Sequence record: NC_070998.1
Strand: one strand, 5' to 3'
DNA length: 64,000 bases
Shown: one piece after another, positions 3,634 to 14,080 of the stretch
Layout: every line of letters begins with the position of its first letter
How positions within the stretch are numbered: position 1 is the stretch's first letter
Position numbers and translations under genes: made by a program
The notes under the pieces: model-generated
What the model saw: the letters and a program-made list of their open reading frames with translations, nothing else
What the model was told of the DNA's origin: nothing
The model's database searches: none

Positions 3634-5658
3634 ATGAAAACAATTAGATTAAGAGAATTTGCAGCACTTGATCAAGTTACAATGCTCAATATGACAGAGC
3701 GTCGTTATAAAGTGGAAGTGATCGATGATCAAGGGGAAAAAGTTATCACTGATAGTTGGCTATTGGCTATTAACTGGTACACTCTTATCCCTCATCGTTA
3801 CTTCCACAATGAGCCTTATTATATTGACGAGGTAATCGTTCTGAAGTCCAAGGAAGGACGTCAGAGCTTTATTGACGATGATAAGTTGAAACATCCGGTG
3901 GACAACTTCCTAGGTCGTATTATGCCTAAGAACGACGATCCCGCTTTCTACGATATGATTAAACAATTGATTTTTGTTTATCATAACGCTTGTCATAACT
4001 ATTTGTGCGTTAAATCCGAGCACGGTGTTGTATCGGCTCGTTCTATGGACGTGTTACATGTACTGAGAAATCCAAAGATCGCTGATCTGAAGAAACGTGT
4101 TCAATCAGGTCAAACTTGTATGGCTGATGGAGCTAAAGAGTTTGAACAGATCATGATGACCGAGCCTGATTTTGATAAATCAGTATTTGGGTTATTGTAC
4201 CGCACACGTTCTGTATCAAGCGTCCAGTCATTCCAGTTGGTAATAGCTCGTGGTGATGTAACAGATCTTAACGGAACTATTCTCCCTAATACCATTATGG
4301 AATCGTACGCTGATGGTATTACCAATCTTGCTGATAGTCTAGCTGACTCTAAAGGTGCTGGTTTCTCGTTGATCTCTAACGGACAGGCACTACAGGACTC
4401 TGAGTGGTTCCACAAGAAGATCCACAACGTTGCTCAGGTAGTTAAAGGTATTGACTACCAAAAGGACTGTGGGAGCACTACAGGGACGATTGTAAAGATT
4501 GTCTCTAAAGAGTTTAAACAGTCTTTGGCTGGGAAGTGGCGAATCCTGGAAGATGGTTCTTTGGAACTATTGATCGGTAAAGCGTTGGATAAGATCGAAA
4601 CTGGAGAAAGGGTAACTTATCGCTCTGTAGCTTGGTGTCGACATGGTAGAACAGGAAGACCGTGTTCCGTGTGTTTTGGTAAAATGGAATCAGCACTGCC
4701 GTTTAACCCTTACACACGAAGAGGAGCAGTTCCTGGATTGTTCTACGGCTCTACTCTTGCTGAACCTATTGGTCAATCTATCCTTAAGACTAAACACCGG
4801 ATTGGTTCTGCGTCAGCTAAAGGGTTTGTAGTTAATCGAGCTGATGCTGATTATATTACTGGTGATGAGTCTGGTGACTATATCTACTTTAAGAAAGAGA
4901 TCCTTAATGAAGATTCTGATCCATATTTGATCTTGGATAAGGAAACACAGCAAGACTTCTCCGACTTTAAGTTTATGGAAAACTTGGAAGATATTGATCT
5001 GTCGCGTGTTCTTAGAACATACGAAACAATTAAACTGCGGGTAAGTATTTCTAACCCTATGTTTGAGAGTAAGAAAGCGGTTCATTATCCCATCATCACC
5101 ACTACTGTTGCAAGTCGCGATGCAAGGATGACCAGAGCGCTTGTAGAGTACTTGTTGGAGCAACCTATAGAGGAGGAGGGTAAAACCTTTAAGATCTCTC
5201 TTAAGGGGTTTGACGCTAAGGAGCCGGCATTTGAGTTACCGCAAGTAAACGAGGACTTGGATGCCTATCGTAAGAGGGTAGAAAACAAGTTTAAGTTTGA
5301 TGAAGTTAAGAATCGTTGGGATCACTGGATTACACCTGAAATCTTTGGTGAGTACGTGGTATCTCTTTGGAAGGTAATTGATGAGAAGTACAAAGGTGCT
5401 AACATCATCATGACTGATATCTTCCTCTGGGCTTGTACAGCTATTGATCCTAATAACCTGGATTATGGTTTGCCTGGTGAAGCTGACAAACGTGTGTTTG
5501 TTTCACTGCACGAGTCTATTATCCATGGTGGTATGAGTAATGCGCTAGTATACGGTTATCAGAAAGAAAGCTTAATTAACGAACCATATCGGTTCCTTGT
5601 TAAGAACCGTAAGGGCGGTGTACTGGAAGCATTCATGAATCCAATCGCAATTAAGTGA
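3634..5658 (+). CDS. rpoC: Non-virion RNA polymerase beta' subunit, C-terminal part (phiKZ gp74-like)
   Basis: Bridge-helix-like region, DCGST and WCRHGRTGRPCSVCFG zinc ligands, AEPIGQSILKTKH equivalent to the trigger-loop GEPGTQLTMRTFH. Confidence 0.9.
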   Translation: MKTIRLREFAALDQVTMLNMTERRYKVEVIDDQGEKVITDSWLLAINWYTLIPHRYFHNEPYYIDEVIVLKSKEGRQSFIDDDKLKHPVDNFLGRIMPKNDDPAFYDMIKQLIFVYHNACHNYLCVKSEHGVVSARSMDVLHVLRNPKIADLKKRVQSGQTCMADGAKEFEQIMMTEPDFDKSVFGLLYRTRSVSSVQSFQLVIARGDVTDLNGTILPNTIMESYADGITNLADSLADSKGAGFSLISNGQALQDSEWFHKKIHNVAQVVKGIDYQKDCGSTTGTIVKIVSKEFKQSLAGKWRILEDGSLELLIGKALDKIETGERVTYRSVAWCRHGRTGRPCSVCFGKMESALPFNPYTRRGAVPGLFYGSTLAEPIGQSILKTKHRIGSASAKGFVVNRADADYITGDESGDYIYFKKEILNEDSDPYLILDKETQQDFSDFKFMENLEDIDLSRVLRTYETIKLRVSISNPMFESKKAVHYPIITTTVASRDARMTRALVEYLLEQPIEEEGKTFKISLKGFDAKEPAFELPQVNEDLDAYRKRVENKFKFDEVKNRWDHWITPEIFGEYVVSLWKVIDEKYKGANIIMTDIFLWACTAIDPNNLDYGLPGEADKRVFVSLHESIIHGGMSNALVYGYQKESLINEPYRFLVKNRKGGVLEAFMNPIAIK

Positions 5659-6704: not shown

Positions 6705-8846
6705 ATGAGAAAGACGTTAGAGGTTTATAAAGCTAGTACCTACGTTAGGCTCACTGGGTATAAACCGGAATTAGTTAAACAGATATTAATGCCTTTTTGT
6801 AAACGTAACTTTGCAAGAGTACAAAAGGTTCCAGGTGATTTATACGGAACACATAAGTGGGAAATCACCCATGTGTTCGCGAGATTCAATAATGATAAAA
6901 CAGAATTAAGGTTCTGTTCATCAATGCTACCTGAACTAATTAAACTCATGACTAGTTCCGGTTATAAAGAGTCACGCATTTCTATTCAAGACGAAAAGGT
7001 AATTAAACCTAAAAAGGTAGTATTACCTTTACTTAATCCAAAGATTAAACCAAGGGATGAAGAACAGGAAGAGTTCTGCGAGTTCATGATGAACGAAGAT
7101 CCTCTTTCTATTAACAACCTTCCGCCGGGGAGGGGTAAAGCACAGCCATTATCATCACTAGTCAAAGTTCCAAATGGCTGGAAAAAGATGGGTGATATCC
7201 GACCGGGTGATAAAGTTACCGCTTGGGATGGTACAACTGTTAATGTTCTTTCTATACATCCACAGGGTGTGAAAGACATTTACGAGTTCACCTTTGCTGA
7301 TGGAAGAACAGCTAAAAGTACCCTAGATCACCTTTGGAAGGTCTTTGATGCTGTATTGGATACTTGGGTGGTGTTAACAACCAAAGAGATCATACAGGGC
7401 GATGTAAAGCGTTTTTCAATACCATTGTTTAAACCTTCAAAAGAAGAATACGAAGATTTAAATAATCAGTTGGAAATGAACTGCTTGGTAATTGATGATA
7501 AAGTTGAAGAACGAACCTTTATGGCGAGTCGTGCCGAATACATTACTGAGTCAGTAAGATCGTTAGGTGGAATTTGTGAGTGTAAATATAGTGATGGATT
7601 TTTCACAGTAACTGGAGACATAAGTCCTGTAGAAAATAAACTCGGTATTGTGTCGGTGTTCAAGATCAGTCAAGAAGAAGCTCAATGTATTTCTATTGAC
7701 CATCCAGATCACTTGTACATCACTGATAACTACGTAGTAACACACAACACGTTCTGCGCCCTATACTCAGCACACCATGTTGGTGAAAGAGTTCTTATCA
7801 CAGTTCTGCCACGGTTCGTTGATATCTGGGTTAAAGCGTTTGGTGAGTTTTACAATATCAAACCTGAAGATGTAGTAGTGGCTGACATCATTGGCGTTCC
7901 TGAACTACATCAAGCTATCGTTAATAACGTGATAGACCCTAAGATCATCATTCTTCCTTTAACTAAGATTGATATTTATCTGAAGAAAATGAGAGATGAT
8001 GAAACTCTACCAAGTCTTGATCAAGTGTTCAATGATCTTGGTTGTGGGATCCGTGTTATTGACGAAGCGCATGAATCGATCTATTCGGTTTATAGTAGTT
8101 TGATGTTTGGTAACCACAAACGCACTTTTGTGTTATCAGGGACATTGAAAGGTGATGATGAATTTGTAAACAAAATTTACAATGCAATCTTTCCCTTTAG
8201 TTGTTACCTGAGATCTCCAGAACACACACCTTACATGCACGTTGTTGCTTATTTCCATCGAATGGATTTATTTAAACATCGTATAAATACAAAAGGTTTT
8301 GGTGGTTATAGCCACGTAAAATTTGAGCAAGGGATATTAAAGAAACCTTGTTTATTTGAAAACTACTACCAAATGCTTTTAGGTGCGTATAAACAGTTTT
8401 ATTTGGACGACTACTTAGAAGGTCAAAAGTCAATGTGGTTTTTTGCCACTACTGAGTTTTGTGATAAGTTCAATGAAAGGTTACTTGTTGACTATCCAGA
8501 GTTAGATTCTATTGTCTTTAACTCTAAGACTAGTAAAAAGGACCCAAATGGATACAGAGAACACACCAATGTCGTAACAACGCCAGGATCTTGCGGTACC
8601 GGAAAAGACATACCCAAGCTCTTTACAGTGTTCTCACCTATAGCTGTGTCTTCTTCCCAGCGTAACAACCAAATGGTCTGTCGCACTAGACCAGTTGATA
8701 AATGGTGGCCAGAACTAATGCCGTACTTTGTTTATTTTGTTTGTCAAGATGAGAAAAAGCAAGTAGAGTACGGTAGAAAGAGAAGGGAACTTTTTAATGG
8801 TGTTTGTAAGAAGTTTTCTATTATCGATAGTGGTGTAAGAATGTAA
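6705..8846 (+). CDS. Superfamily 2 (DExH) helicase with intein (phiKZ gp75-like)
   Basis: Walker A PPGRGK/T split by the intein; VIDEAH Walker B; LSGT motif III; GTGKDIP motif V; QMVCRTRP motif VI. Confidence 0.9.
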   Translation: MRKTLEVYKASTYVRLTGYKPELVKQILMPFCKRNFARVQKVPGDLYGTHKWEITHVFARFNNDKTELRFCSSMLPELIKLMTSSGYKESRISIQDEKVIKPKKVVLPLLNPKIKPRDEEQEEFCEFMMNEDPLSINNLPPGRGKAQPLSSLVKVPNGWKKMGDIRPGDKVTAWDGTTVNVLSIHPQGVKDIYEFTFADGRTAKSTLDHLWKVFDAVLDTWVVLTTKEIIQGDVKRFSIPLFKPSKEEYEDLNNQLEMNCLVIDDKVEERTFMASRAEYITESVRSLGGICECKYSDGFFTVTGDISPVENKLGIVSVFKISQEEAQCISIDHPDHLYITDNYVVTHNTFCALYSAHHVGERVLITVLPRFVDIWVKAFGEFYNIKPEDVVVADIIGVPELHQAIVNNVIDPKIIILPLTKIDIYLKKMRDDETLPSLDQVFNDLGCGIRVIDEAHESIYSVYSSLMFGNHKRTFVLSGTLKGDDEFVNKIYNAIFPFSCYLRSPEHTPYMHVVAYFHRMDLFKHRINTKGFGGYSHVKFEQGILKKPCLFENYYQMLLGAYKQFYLDDYLEGQKSMWFFATTEFCDKFNERLLVDYPELDSIVFNSKTSKKDPNGYREHTNVVTTPGSCGTGKDIPKLFTVFSPIAVSSSQRNNQMVCRTRPVDKWWPELMPYFVYFVCQDEKKQVEYGRKRRELFNGVCKKFSIIDSGVRM
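7140..7748 (+). mobile_element. Class-3 (WCT) mini-intein, 203 aa, in the helicase P-loop
   Basis: Starts AQPLSS (Ala1); block B STLDHLW; block F AQCISID; ends VVTHN followed by +1 Thr; excision restores GRGKT. Confidence 0.92.
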
Positions 8847-10376: not shown

Positions 10377-10473
10377 TAATTTACTTTTTCTATTTACTGA
10401 CCAAGGATTTCTTTGTCACAAATACCTTTTACTACCCCAGACGTTTATAGTTAAAGGGATATAAATCCCTACT

Positions 10474-10507
10474 CTATAATTTCTCAGACAGATATAATCC
10501 CAATGCA
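10474..10507 (+). promoter_or_regulatory. Putative early promoter, degenerate copy
   Basis: CTATAATTTCTCAGACAGATATAATCCCAATGCA aligns ungapped with the other copies; 32 nt before the HNH start. Confidence 0.55.
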
Positions 10508-10539
10508 TCACTACCAGGTGTAAACAAAAGGACCATATA

Positions 10540-11865
10540 ATGAGTGAAAATAATTACGTTTCAGTAGATGCTGAATTAACCGATGTATACAAGCCTCTGA
10601 CAGATATCTTAGGTTTGCAATACGATGGCGCTATGAGTTACGAAGAACGAGTTCAAAAACGTTACAATTACGTTAAAGAGCAATTGGAACTAGATCCTAA
10701 CTATGAAGGATGGGATTGGGTAGAATACTGCGGTTCTGCTAACTCCACGGCTAAGGATCATGAATTTAAGCTGACGCGTTCAGTTGTTTCTATGATAAGT
10801 ACCAAGGGTAAGTTAGCAACTAAATGTTCGGGAAAAGGAATGTCGGTTTCCTTAGGATCGATATCTGGTAGATACCTCAGAACAACGTTCCAAAACTTAA
10901 ACGGGAAATATATTAAGGCTTATATCCATCGGATTATCGGATGTACATTTAAACCAATACCGGACAAATATAAGGATAAAGAAATTAGAGATCTCATAGT
11001 TAATCACGATGATGGCAACCGAACTAGAAACCTATTATCAAACGTGTCGTGGATGACACAGCAGGAAAATCTATTACACGCAGTAGAAATAGGTAAGATC
11101 CCTTCCGGGTTTGGACACGCTGAATCACTAAAGGCGACGTTTACTGTTCCCGGTGAACATTACGGAGAAACCTTTTTGCTCAACGGCTATAACCAAGCAA
11201 ATGAATTCGGGATTTGCTACCATACGGTAAGGTCAGCCGCATTGAAAAATAAGAATACACTATTTTGCGACTGGGAGGTAGCAGTATGCGAGGATATAGT
11301 AGAAACACCTATTTCTCCGCCAGATTGGTATAGTATCTATATCAAGGAACATCAAGATGAACGCATGAAGAAATATTTGGATAAGGATAAGAATACAGAC
11401 ACTTTCAAAGGTACTGAAGTCTTCACTGGTGTAGAAACATTAACAGATATTTTAAACATAGATTATGACGAGACAACCTTAGATGAACGTGCTAAAATAA
11501 GAAAGGCGTACATAGATCTTCACCCAAACGTAGTACATTGGGAGTTTATGGAATACATCCCAGGGAAGGCATATGCTAGAGAAAACACAACTACACCACC
11601 TTGGAGAACTGAAAGTGTGGTTATCAGCACGGATGGAGAAGTAGGTAAAGTAAATTTAAAAGGTGAAGTTTTTACTAGGGGTGGTCCCAGTGGCGGGTAT
11701 TATAAGTTCGTCCAAAAGTTTGGTGACTATCCCCAGGAACACATAACGATACACAGGGCAATGGCTTCTACGTTTATACCAGTTCCTGACGGATGTAAAC
11801 TTAAAGCAAAGTTAGCGGATAATGATAATAAAAATTTGACTTTAGACAATATTTACTGGGAGTAA
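10540..11865 (+). CDS. Free-standing HNH homing endonuclease with a second degenerate module
   Basis: YIHRIIGCTF...IVNHDDGNRTRNLLSNVSWMTQQENLLH is an intact HNH; the N-terminal LTDILG...EY module recurs at aa 301. Confidence 0.88.
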   Translation: MSENNYVSVDAELTDVYKPLTDILGLQYDGAMSYEERVQKRYNYVKEQLELDPNYEGWDWVEYCGSANSTAKDHEFKLTRSVVSMISTKGKLATKCSGKGMSVSLGSISGRYLRTTFQNLNGKYIKAYIHRIIGCTFKPIPDKYKDKEIRDLIVNHDDGNRTRNLLSNVSWMTQQENLLHAVEIGKIPSGFGHAESLKATFTVPGEHYGETFLLNGYNQANEFGICYHTVRSAALKNKNTLFCDWEVAVCEDIVETPISPPDWYSIYIKEHQDERMKKYLDKDKNTDTFKGTEVFTGVETLTDILNIDYDETTLDERAKIRKAYIDLHPNVVHWEFMEYIPGKAYARENTTTPPWRTESVVISTDGEVGKVNLKGEVFTRGGPSGGYYKFVQKFGDYPQEHITIHRAMASTFIPVPDGCKLKAKLADNDNKNLTLDNIYWE

Positions 11866-11869
11866 ATTT

Positions 11870-11900
11870 AACCACGTGTCTCTAGAAGAGACACGTGGTT
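11870..11900. terminator. Bidirectional terminator between HNH and vRNAP genes
   Basis: AACCACGTGTCTCT-AGA-AGAGACACGTGGTT, A/T-rich flanks. Confidence 0.8.
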
Positions 11901-11904
11901 TTTA

Positions 11905-13209
11905 TTACTTAACTATTTTTGTTATATCAATCTTAACCATCTTCAGTTGTGACATGTGGATACTTTTCATGCGGCCTAACATGATGTGGGTGAAGATAAG
12001 AACTGTTTCGGCAGAAACACGGTTTTGAATAGCACCAAGTTTTTCTCCGCAGCAAACCTTACAAAGGTTAAAGTCACCTTGTTCGCAGAACTGTGGAACT
12101 CTAAATTGCAGTGGTTTACCTAACAGTGCTTTATCGGCTTTAGTCAATACCTTTAGACCATCAGCGGTTTTATAATAACCACCTACCCAAGATCCGAAAC
12201 TAAAATCATTAAGCGTTACTGTTTCCGTTCTCGGGGTTTGACAATCTGTATCAATAGCTTCTATACGGTCAGTAAGAAGAATCATTACCTTAACTTCTGC
12301 GCCACCTTCACCTGTTGCATTGCCACGGTCATAAGAACCAGAAATAGCCGTATTTATATAAGCGGGATAGTTATCTTTATCCCAACCTTCATTCAACGAG
12401 TTACGAAGTAGCTGATACTTCCCGGTGTTGAAATCAGGAACCATATCAAAAACAACAAACATTTTCTTACGGGCGTTATCAATGAACTTCTTATCAATGA
12501 AGAAGTCTTTAGATGGACCGTTGTATTGAATAGAAGCATCAAGCGCTACAACTTCATCAATGACTTTAGCTACAGCTGCTGCATCATTGAGCTTATTCTC
12601 TTTCTCTAGTTCATTAAGTAACTTGTCTCGAAGCTTGATTACATCAGGATGTACTGTAAGAACATCTAGGGAAGATGCTTTAACAAATACATCATTAAGA
12701 CCTTCTAAGTAATCAAGGTTCTTGGTGATGTTAAGACATTGTGTTACAGAAGCTTTATCAGAGGGAATAGTTTCACCTTCTTTAGGATCATCTACCATGA
12801 TAGAGTCAATTAGACCACGTACTGTACCAGAGGTAATTGGTCCATTGATATAGCTTGCTGCATGTCCAACTGATTCGAAGAAAACTACTAAGTTGACTAA
12901 TAACAATCCTACTGTAGTTTCAATCTTCTCTTTAATGAATTCATGAACTGACATATCGACAGTGATTTTGTCGTTCTTATTAAATAGTGCTTTATCGTAC
13001 TCTGCGTGTTCTATAACGACTTTCTTACCTTCTTTAAGGAAATATACTTCCTTGGTGTCAGGATCGCGTAGAAGCGCATAAGGGATTGTTTTGAGCTTGT
13101 TATTGTTAGCTACAGAAGGAGTTACAATAGAGAATACTGAAAGTAGAAATGATTTACGATTGTAAGCTCTATTATTAATTGCTTCAAAGAGATAATCAAA
13201 CTTGTTCAT
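11905..13209 (-). CDS. rpoC: Virion RNA polymerase beta' subunit fragment (phiKZ gp80-like)
   Basis: SGSYDRGNATGEGGAEVK bridge-helix equivalent; DCQT and PQFCEQGDFNLCKVCCG zinc site; HIMLGRMKSIH trigger-loop equivalent. Confidence 0.85.
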   Translation of the reverse strand: MNKFDYLFEAINNRAYNRKSFLLSVFSIVTPSVANNNKLKTIPYALLRDPDTKEVYFLKEGKKVVIEHAEYDKALFNKNDKITVDMSVHEFIKEKIETTVGLLLVNLVVFFESVGHAASYINGPITSGTVRGLIDSIMVDDPKEGETIPSDKASVTQCLNITKNLDYLEGLNDVFVKASSLDVLTVHPDVIKLRDKLLNELEKENKLNDAAAVAKVIDEVVALDASIQYNGPSKDFFIDKKFIDNARKKMFVVFDMVPDFNTGKYQLLRNSLNEGWDKDNYPAYINTAISGSYDRGNATGEGGAEVKVMILLTDRIEAIDTDCQTPRTETVTLNDFSFGSWVGGYYKTADGLKVLTKADKALLGKPLQFRVPQFCEQGDFNLCKVCCGEKLGAIQNRVSAETVLIFTHIMLGRMKSIHMSQLKMVKIDITKIVK

Positions 13210-14080
13210 CTAGTTTAACCTTTTCCAATAGAGTTTGTGCTTTGTAAATCTCATCTATGTTTTCTGCCACTTCTTCTAACAAAGCGTAATACTGGGATTT
13301 GATTTGACCGTCAGTAAGATCAGAGATAAGCATCAGAGAAAGAACTTGCTTAAAGTAATCTAGTTTGTTCTCAGTGAGTTTAATCCCAAGATCAGAAACA
13401 AACAAGGTCATTAATACTTCTAGGGAGAGTGTAGAAGCCCCACCTTTCGTAATGTGTTCCCAAGCTAAGGTTTCTCTAAGAAACTCTTTATTAGCTTGTA
13501 CACGACGCTTAATGGTAGGTTCCATATATTCAGTGTCATCATTATCTAGGATATTCAAACCAATAAGAATACCTTTGGTAACGTTAGGAGAAACCTCCTT
13601 AATCATATAAGGGAAGTTTTCTAAATCGTAATTTGGTTCAACACGTTCAATGACGCGAATGAAACGCTCTTTAGCATCAATCAATTCGTCATCTAGAATC
13701 TCTACCAATTGCATGAGATCGTCCATTCCATCTAACGTATATATGGTGTCTAAAATGTGGACAAGATCTTTCAAGCTATCTGGTGAAACATAATCGTAAT
13801 CAATGATAATTCCCATCATCTGTAAACAATCTACTATGCTGTCGATCAGAAGTTTTCTGATATGCATAACAGTGTCAGATGTTTCAAGGGATTCATCAAT
13901 TAGGATATTGGTAATTTGAATATCGTTTCCATTCTCAGGAAGTGAGATAGAAATTAAGTTATACGCATCCTTGAATAATATAGCTGCTTCAGGCATTAGC
14001 CTTGCAGCAAAATCCTGCCACATCTCGCCTAAATTTTCTACAGCAAGATTTCTGTCTCCAAGATCAATTATCTCAGACAT
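13196..14080 (-). CDS. Conserved acidic helical protein, probable virion component
   Basis: 294-aa ORF overlapping the vRNAP gene start; late-like motif upstream. Confidence 0.8.
   Translation of the reverse strand: MSEIIDLGDRNLAVENLGEMWQDFAARLMPEAAILFKDAYNLISISLPENGNDIQITNILIDESLETSDTVMHIRKLLIDSIVDCLQMMGIIIDYDYVSPDSLKDLVHILDTIYTLDGMDDLMQLVEILDDELIDAKERFIRVIERVEPNYDLENFPYMIKEVSPNVTKGILIGLNILDNDDTEYMEPTIKRRVQANKEFLRETLAWEHITKGGASTLSLEVLMTLFVSDLGIKLTENKLDYFKQVLSLMLISDLTDGQIKSQYYALLEEVAENIDEIYKAQTLLEKVKLDEQV

Follow-up and report, generated by a model that had tools for sequence, protein, structure and literature searches.

Inteins that lack an N-terminal nucleophile are found mostly in the P-loops of helicases and phage terminases, as has been established since 2010 (PMC2807308). 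Those of class 3 are defined by a sequence signature and by a branched intermediate formed at a block-F cysteine (PMC2807308, PMC3196547), and both the class-3 mechanism and the bias towards the P-loops of helicases and terminases are described in several studies (PMC2807308, PMC3196547, PMC5050341). For the mycobacteriophage inteins Bethlehem DnaB and Catera gp206 and for the TerL1-a P-loop inteins, splicing and the block-F branch have been demonstrated experimentally (PMC2807308, PMC3196547, PMC5050341). In bacteria, the class-3 intein DnaBi1 of Mycobacterium smegmatis is reversibly blocked by a disulfide between Cys48 and Cys118 (PMC6195587) and also by zinc bound to Cys118 and Tyr128 (PMC7360933). 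Here we analyze an insert in a gene of the Aeromonas phage PS1, contained in a stretch of 64,000 nucleotides of the sequence record NC_070998.1 (the window; position in the PS1 record = window position + 62000). We conclude that positions 7140-7748 of the window very probably encode a splicing-competent class-3 intein, a selfish element seated between the Lys and the Thr of the Walker A motif of a phiKZ gp75-type helicase of superfamily 2 (SF2); the intein is dispensable and most likely not a regulator.

With DnaBi1 (6bs8/6own) and with DnaB-1 of Mycobacterium chimaera (6rix/6riy) the PS1 insert shares the class-3 signature, the position after the Walker A Lys of a helicase, the HINT fold, the loss of the endonuclease and the residues that serve as zinc ligands. 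These two inteins reside, however, in the bacterial replicative DnaB, a hexameric helicase of the RecA fold, whereas the PS1 host protein is a phage SF2 helicase, and the identity to PS1 is only ~17%. Moreover, PS1 retains a folded endonuclease half-domain of 67 amino acids where DnaBi1 has a disordered linker. The mycobacteriophage inteins are likewise phage-borne and of class 3 or located in a P-loop, but they belong to actinobacteriophages, interrupt other host proteins and show sequence kinship only in the family blocks. Much closer are the inteins at the gp75 site of the phages D6, AerS_266 and AhC3_1, of Pseudomonas phage EL (gp040) and of Vibrio phage VP4B, which have the host gene, the GK|T insertion site and the class-3 residues in common with PS1, with 38-55% identity, and differ in residue 1 (L, A, E, M) and in length. 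The inteins of phage EL have entries in InBase.

The open reading frame (ORF) containing the insert extends without interruption from 6705 to 8846 on the plus strand (2142 nucleotides, 713 amino acids) and is 100% identical to the gene of the phages PS1 and PS2, 237-kb jumbo phages of the genus Ferozepurvirus; the window is from PS1. Residues 146-348 of the product, corresponding to 7140-7748 (plus strand, 609 nucleotides in frame, 203 amino acids from Ala1 to Asn203), separate GRGK from T, i.e., the Lys and the Thr of the Walker A motif. In the Ferozepurvirus phages AVP1 and pAEv1810 the gene measures 1533 nucleotides (2142 minus 609) and is 93-94% identical to the PS1 gene on the nucleotide level; exactly the 609 nucleotides are absent and the junction reads PPGRGK-TFCAL. 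Since two precise empty alleles exist, the boundaries of the insert are fixed independently of any interpretation. ACP1 is occupied, with an insert at 93% amino acid identity to that of PS1, and the insert is unbroken in PS1, PS2 and ACP1. The N-extein (amino acids 1-145; 6705-7139, plus strand), delimited by alignment with the empty alleles, ends with the start of Walker A or SF2 motif I (PPGRGK, 7122-7139) and is identical on the protein level in all four Ferozepurvirus alleles. The C-extein (7749-8846, plus strand) begins with the Thr+1 codon (7749-7751), which completes Walker A as GK-T.

Removing the insert in silico yields GRGK-T (SF2 motif I, GxGKT) together with a DEAH box at 8061-8072 and an SGT motif; D453, E454, A455 and H456 of the DEAH box are invariant in the alignment with the empty alleles. 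The ORF is assigned to phrog_16 (PHROG16), DNA helicase, in PHROGs (E 6e-32). A tblastn search with the intein-less allele matched 290 jumbo-phage records, among them PHIKZ075, 201phi2-1, PhiPA3, Goslar and SPN3US, and "RAD2/SF2 helicase" is a frequent annotation in these records. The Pfam match to ResIII is weak (E 0.014). A sequence-only reading of the window had taken the host for a gp75-like helicase, and this agrees with the PHIKZ075 ortholog (E 5e-29). Judged from these similarities the product of 6705-8846 is a phiKZ gp75-type SF2 (DEAH) helicase. In GenBank the product is named hypothetical and in RefSeq "DarB-like antirestriction".

We then compared the insert with the class-3 signature. 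Residue 1 is Ala (GCA, 7140-7142), so that no Cys or Ser nucleophile is present at this position. Block B contains the sequence TLDHLW (7320-7337) with His64 (H-B10) at 7329-7331 and Trp66 (W-B12) at 7335-7337. In block F, the sequence AQCIS provides Cys183 (F4; codon 7686-7688), followed by Tyr193 at 7716-7718. The insert ends with VVTHN, in which Thr201 (G5), His202 and Asn203 occupy 7740-7748, and is followed by Thr+1, giving THN|T at 7740-7751. The sequence-only reading had named just these features, from the split of Walker A between Lys and Thr and the 203-residue length to Ala1, TLDHLW, AQCIS and THN, as marks of a class-3 intein; all of them are in place, the empty alleles read GRGK-T, and the identification is borne out by the invariance of the Trp-Cys-Thr (W-C-T) triad, the class-3 matches in the PDB and the HINT model. 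With respect to its sequence, 7140-7748 thus has every feature by which class 3 is defined.

The insert has relatives in 509 phage records (tblastn). A family alignment of 22 members was made from PS1 and 21 related inteins of IMG/VR contigs, all 21 of which follow the GK of a P-loop and precede Thr or Ser. Here G13, H64, W66, C183, I184, L192, T201, H202 and N203 are invariant and Y193 is at least 90% conserved, whereas the first residue is not fixed (A, E, M, G, S, C). Among the relatives overall position 1 is occupied by A, E, L, M, N or G, with S or C only in rare cases. A variable first residue together with an invariant block-F Cys is what one would predict for a reaction started by this Cys and not by residue 1. 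One intein of a gp75-type helicase on an IMG/VR contig (L025:2495-3223) has the full W-C-T triad and yet Cys1; it could belong to class 3 in spite of its N-terminal nucleophile or stand between class 1 and class 3.

The best sequence matches in the PDB (phmmer) are M. chimaera DnaB-1 (6rix/6riy, E 5e-8 and 1e-7), followed by M. smegmatis DnaBi1 (6bs8, E 1e-6). In these alignments H64-L65-W66 of PS1 fall on H-Q-W, C183 on the catalytic block-F Cys (C118 of DnaBi1) and T-H-N on T-H-N, and the resemblance to class-3 inteins at this level is far beyond chance. An AlphaFold2 model of the intein computed from the family alignment (predicted local distance difference test score, pLDDT, 94.3; predicted template modeling score, pTM, 0.88) has the HINT fold. 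Its N-terminal lobe with blocks A and B comprises amino acids 1-96 (7140-7427, plus strand; from family alignment and model) and the C-terminal part with blocks F and G amino acids 164-203 (7629-7748, plus strand; from the family alignment). The top Foldseek matches of the model are the class-3 DnaB inteins (template modeling score 0.81-0.86, normalized to the target), with gp41-1, Prp8, GyrA and other inteins among the further matches. There are 58 PDB matches at E<=0.001, and all 43 of those listed are inteins, bacterial intein-like domains or hedgehog HINT domains. Pfam found Hint in the intein only below threshold (E 0.009-0.02), and the identification therefore rests on the PDB sequence matches, PHROGs, the family alignments and the fold.

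The center of the insert is a degenerate LAGLIDADG half-domain of ~67 amino acids (97-163; 7428-7628, plus strand), as supported by alignment, a hidden Markov model (HMM) and the fold model. In full-length allelic inteins their counterpart is the latter half of the endonuclease, and an HMM built on the endonuclease regions of the relatives gives them 20.8 bits, a value reached by none of 2000 shuffled sequences (best 6.0). The match spans the segment SRAEYITESVRSLGGICECK, equivalent to the helix and strand that follow the second LAGLIDADG motif. Modeled alone, the 67 residues adopt a helix-strand-strand-helix-strand-strand order (pLDDT 86). Foldseek with this short query gave no significant E-value (best 0.15). 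With VIA-align, LAGLIDADG enzymes or LAGLIDADG-type (WhiA) domains took 19 of the 22 top places, the matches including the TliVMA endonuclease domain, I-DmoI, PI-SceI residues 309-389, I-CreI, I-CvuI and WhiA; the Z values are middling (5-6 with 58-67 residues aligned) and carry conviction only in combination with the sequence data. Pfam detected no LAGLIDADG domain in the PS1 intein and LAGLIDADG_3 in the centers of two relatives. Thus the earlier proposal of a LAGLIDADG remnant holds with regard to its nature, but not to its extent, which had been given as a segment of only 20 amino acids. The LAGLIDADG motif helix of the remnant is degenerate, the intact pair of catalytic motifs is lost and one half-domain is left; from this sequence endonuclease activity is very unlikely.

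The sequence-only reading had also proposed a comparison with the gp75-like helicases of relatives, and this comparison uncovered empty alleles (AVP1, pAEv1810) as well as full-length ones (D6, AerS_266). At one and the same GK|T site of the helicase the inteins measure 352 amino acids in AerS_266 and 351 in D6, both with two clear LAGLIDADG motifs, 248 in EL with one motif left, 231 in AhC3_1, 203 in PS1 and ACP1, and 198 in VP4B. In a tree calculated from the HINT columns PS1 and ACP1 are nested within the clade of Aeromonas-phage helicase inteins of AerS_266, D6 and AhC3_1 (Shimodaira-Hasegawa-like approximate likelihood ratio test 96-97). This nesting among full-length allelic inteins indicates that the PS1 mini-intein is a deletion derivative of such an intein, and the allelic size series reads as the ordinary cycle of invasion, decay and loss of a selfish element.

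The inteins of PS1 and ACP1 differ by 38 synonymous and 17.7 non-synonymous changes, so that the ratio of non-synonymous to synonymous divergence (dN/dS) is 0.10, compared with 0.03-0.06 in the exteins. The intein has probably retained splicing. Retained splicing is the simplest account of the purifying selection, the conserved helicase and an insert which must leave Walker A before ATP can be bound. By homology with the class-3 inteins that have been tested, the precursor would be translated as a whole and be incapable of proper ATP binding. Cys183, positioned by His64, Trp66 and Thr201, would attack the peptide bond between Lys145 and Ala1 and take over the N-extein as a thioester branch, from which it would be passed to Thr+1. 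Cyclization of Asn203, aided by His202, would free the intein, and an O-to-N shift would restore GRGK-T and hence an active helicase of 510 amino acids. The ancestor would have been a full-length LAGLIDADG intein at the same site that lost its endonuclease save for one degenerate half-domain. With this loss the PS1 intein should no longer home by itself, and it would persist since any imprecise deletion ruins the helicase.

Several points weigh against a splicing-competent class-3 intein. We found no published splicing experiment for the PS1 intein or for any intein at the gp75 site. The dN/dS value of the intein comes from a single intein-bearing pair, PS1 and ACP1, and these two sit on a long branch (0.51) in the HINT-column tree. 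PS1 and ACP1 have a Thr at position 7 of block B, unlike most class-3 inteins (PMC6195587). Furthermore, grafting W-C-T onto a class-1 intein gave no splicing (PMC7664689), so that the triad has to be regarded as necessary but insufficient evidence of activity.

We also considered the proposal of the sequence-only reading that the immobile intein is kept as a conditional switch, responding to redox state, zinc or temperature, which times or gates the helicase. From the P-loop position one would expect the precursor to be inactive before splicing, the catalytic Cys183 is inherently oxidizable, and the class-3 P-loop intein DnaBi1 is such a switch (PMC6195587). Its zinc ligands C118 and Y128 (PMC7360933) are conserved as C183 and Y193, as far as the residues are concerned. 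However, Cys48, the disulfide partner in DnaBi1, aligns with Ile47 in PS1 and consequently the redox trap of the DnaBi1 type is absent; the remaining Cys residues of the PS1 intein (115, 146 and 148) all lie within the endonuclease remnant. The nearest relatives have empty alleles and occupancy is sporadic across the 290-member helicase family; the existence of empty alleles at 93-94% nucleotide identity implies that the PS1 intein is dispensable. The decay series is in line with the life cycle of a selfish element, and the need to splice already accounts for the purifying selection. Of the DnaBi1 switch only the zinc-ligand residues are conserved, and we regard a switch role in PS1 as unlikely. 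Sensitivity of PS1 splicing to zinc or oxidants in vitro is plausible from the residues present and would not imply a biological role.

Possibly the intein or its folded half-LAGLIDADG domain has been co-opted, either to delay activation of the helicase during infection in a zinc- or oxidant-sensitive manner or, in the case of the remnant, to aid folding or splicing or to bind nucleic acid. If the remnant were of use, one could understand the survival of a compact folded domain, and not of a loose linker, in several independent lineages. We consider co-option quite improbable. In the comparison of PS1 with ACP1 the center has six codons with amino acid changes and five with synonymous changes only, the HINT parts eight and 29 (Fisher p = 0.058), which is suggestive only of relaxed selection on the remnant.

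That the intein no longer splices, with the helicase gene effectively dead or the precursor working unspliced, would have a precedent in the class-3-like Arth_1007, a documented pseudogene (PMC3196547). Yet Arth_1007 is without Cys F4 whereas the catalytic residues of PS1 are all intact, and neither the low dN/dS of intein and exteins nor the unbroken insert in PS1, PS2 and ACP1 is expected of a dead gene, so that we judge this highly improbable. Splicing by another route, such as the direct attack of the +1 residue in class 2, might be suggested by Ala1, which the class-2 KlbA inteins share, and by the Thr in the seventh position of block B, found also in classes 1 and 2, but is barely credible given that the W-C-T triad, invariant in the PS1 family, is missing from class-2 inteins (PMC2807308) and that the closest solved relatives are of class 3.

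Concerning the origin of the PS1 intein we find no sign of recent homing or arrival: the synonymous divergence (dS) from ACP1 is 0.38 in the intein and 0.22 in the adjacent N-extein, so that the intein value is not reduced. The G+C content (38.8% in the intein, 37.0-37.5% in the exteins) is unremarkable and gives no signal of foreign origin. The helicase gene itself is mosaic. Over the first ~900 nucleotides (spliced coordinates) all four Ferozepurvirus alleles are ~95% identical, and over the last ~600 nucleotides ACP1 is only ~70% identical to the other alleles, which places a recombination breakpoint inside the C-extein. Within the intein (PS1 7140-7748 compared with ACP1 L003:1936-2544) 26 synonymous-only codons fall into the first 96 codons and eight into the remaining 107; this uneven distribution may mark a further recombination junction. 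AVP1 and pAEv1810 may have exchanged the intein for an empty allele by recombination, or it may have been acquired along with its flanks by PS1 and ACP1, and both orders fit the alleles.

The helicase gene lies downstream of a gene for a phiKZ-type RNA polymerase beta subunit, a neighborhood shared with D6, AerS_266, VP4B and EL. In the window, the upstream ORF at 3634-5658 (plus strand, 674 amino acids) is annotated as a piece of the phiKZ-type RNA polymerase beta and has no Pfam match at E<=1; in the four phages just named the polymerase piece is likewise followed by small ORFs and then by the helicase. The annotation further shows a gene for a free-standing HNH endonuclease at 10540-11865 (plus strand; 72540-73865 in the PS1 record), ~1.7 kb downstream of the helicase.

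A second class-3 intein of 354 amino acids is present in PS1 outside the window, at 10990-12051 of the record NC_070998.1 (L008:1991-3052). It has Ala1, HLW, Cys F4 and THN|T and is located in the PRQSGK|T P-loop of gp008, a TerL-like protein of 1122 amino acids whose gene (10459-13827 of the record; L008:1460-4828) is also misnamed "DarB-like antirestriction". This intein has a Pfam-detectable, apparently intact LAGLIDADG_3 endonuclease and occurs in all four Ferozepurvirus genomes (PS1, AVP1, pAEv1810 and ACP1). It belongs to another clade than the helicase intein of PS1 and groups with the TerL intein of Klebsiella phage Miami. Across the family the inteins cluster by host protein beyond chance, but the tree requires six or more host switches; this host switching echoes the spread from P-loop to P-loop described for mycobacteriophages (PMC5050341). 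On IMG/VR viral contigs, inteins of the same family also occupy the GK|T/S of at least nine P-loop proteins without a BLAST match to the gp75-type helicase or to the TerL-like protein (loci L020, L026-L028, L030, L032, L051, L076 and L093). The smallest members at these loci have 144-159 amino acids and no endonuclease remnant.

A literature search gave no description of the PS1 intein or of inteins at the gp75 site of phiKZ-like phages; inteins of jumbo phages receive only passing mention in reviews and the PS1 intein is unannotated in the database records. Although unannotated, the PS1 insert is an ordinary representative of a class of selfish elements that is well known, and the current understanding of inteins is unchanged by it. 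The annotation of the gene should be corrected from "hypothetical" or "DarB-like antirestriction" to an intein-containing gp75-type SF2 helicase with a mature length of 510 amino acids. The 203-amino acid intein, or a version trimmed to ~135 amino acids, is one more candidate part for protein engineering. Cultivable Aeromonas phages with natural alleles, occupied or empty, that are 93-94% identical on the nucleotide level, combined with a decay series from 352 to 198 amino acids at one site, offer a convenient system for studying the decay, loss and trans-mobilization of inteins in jumbo phages.

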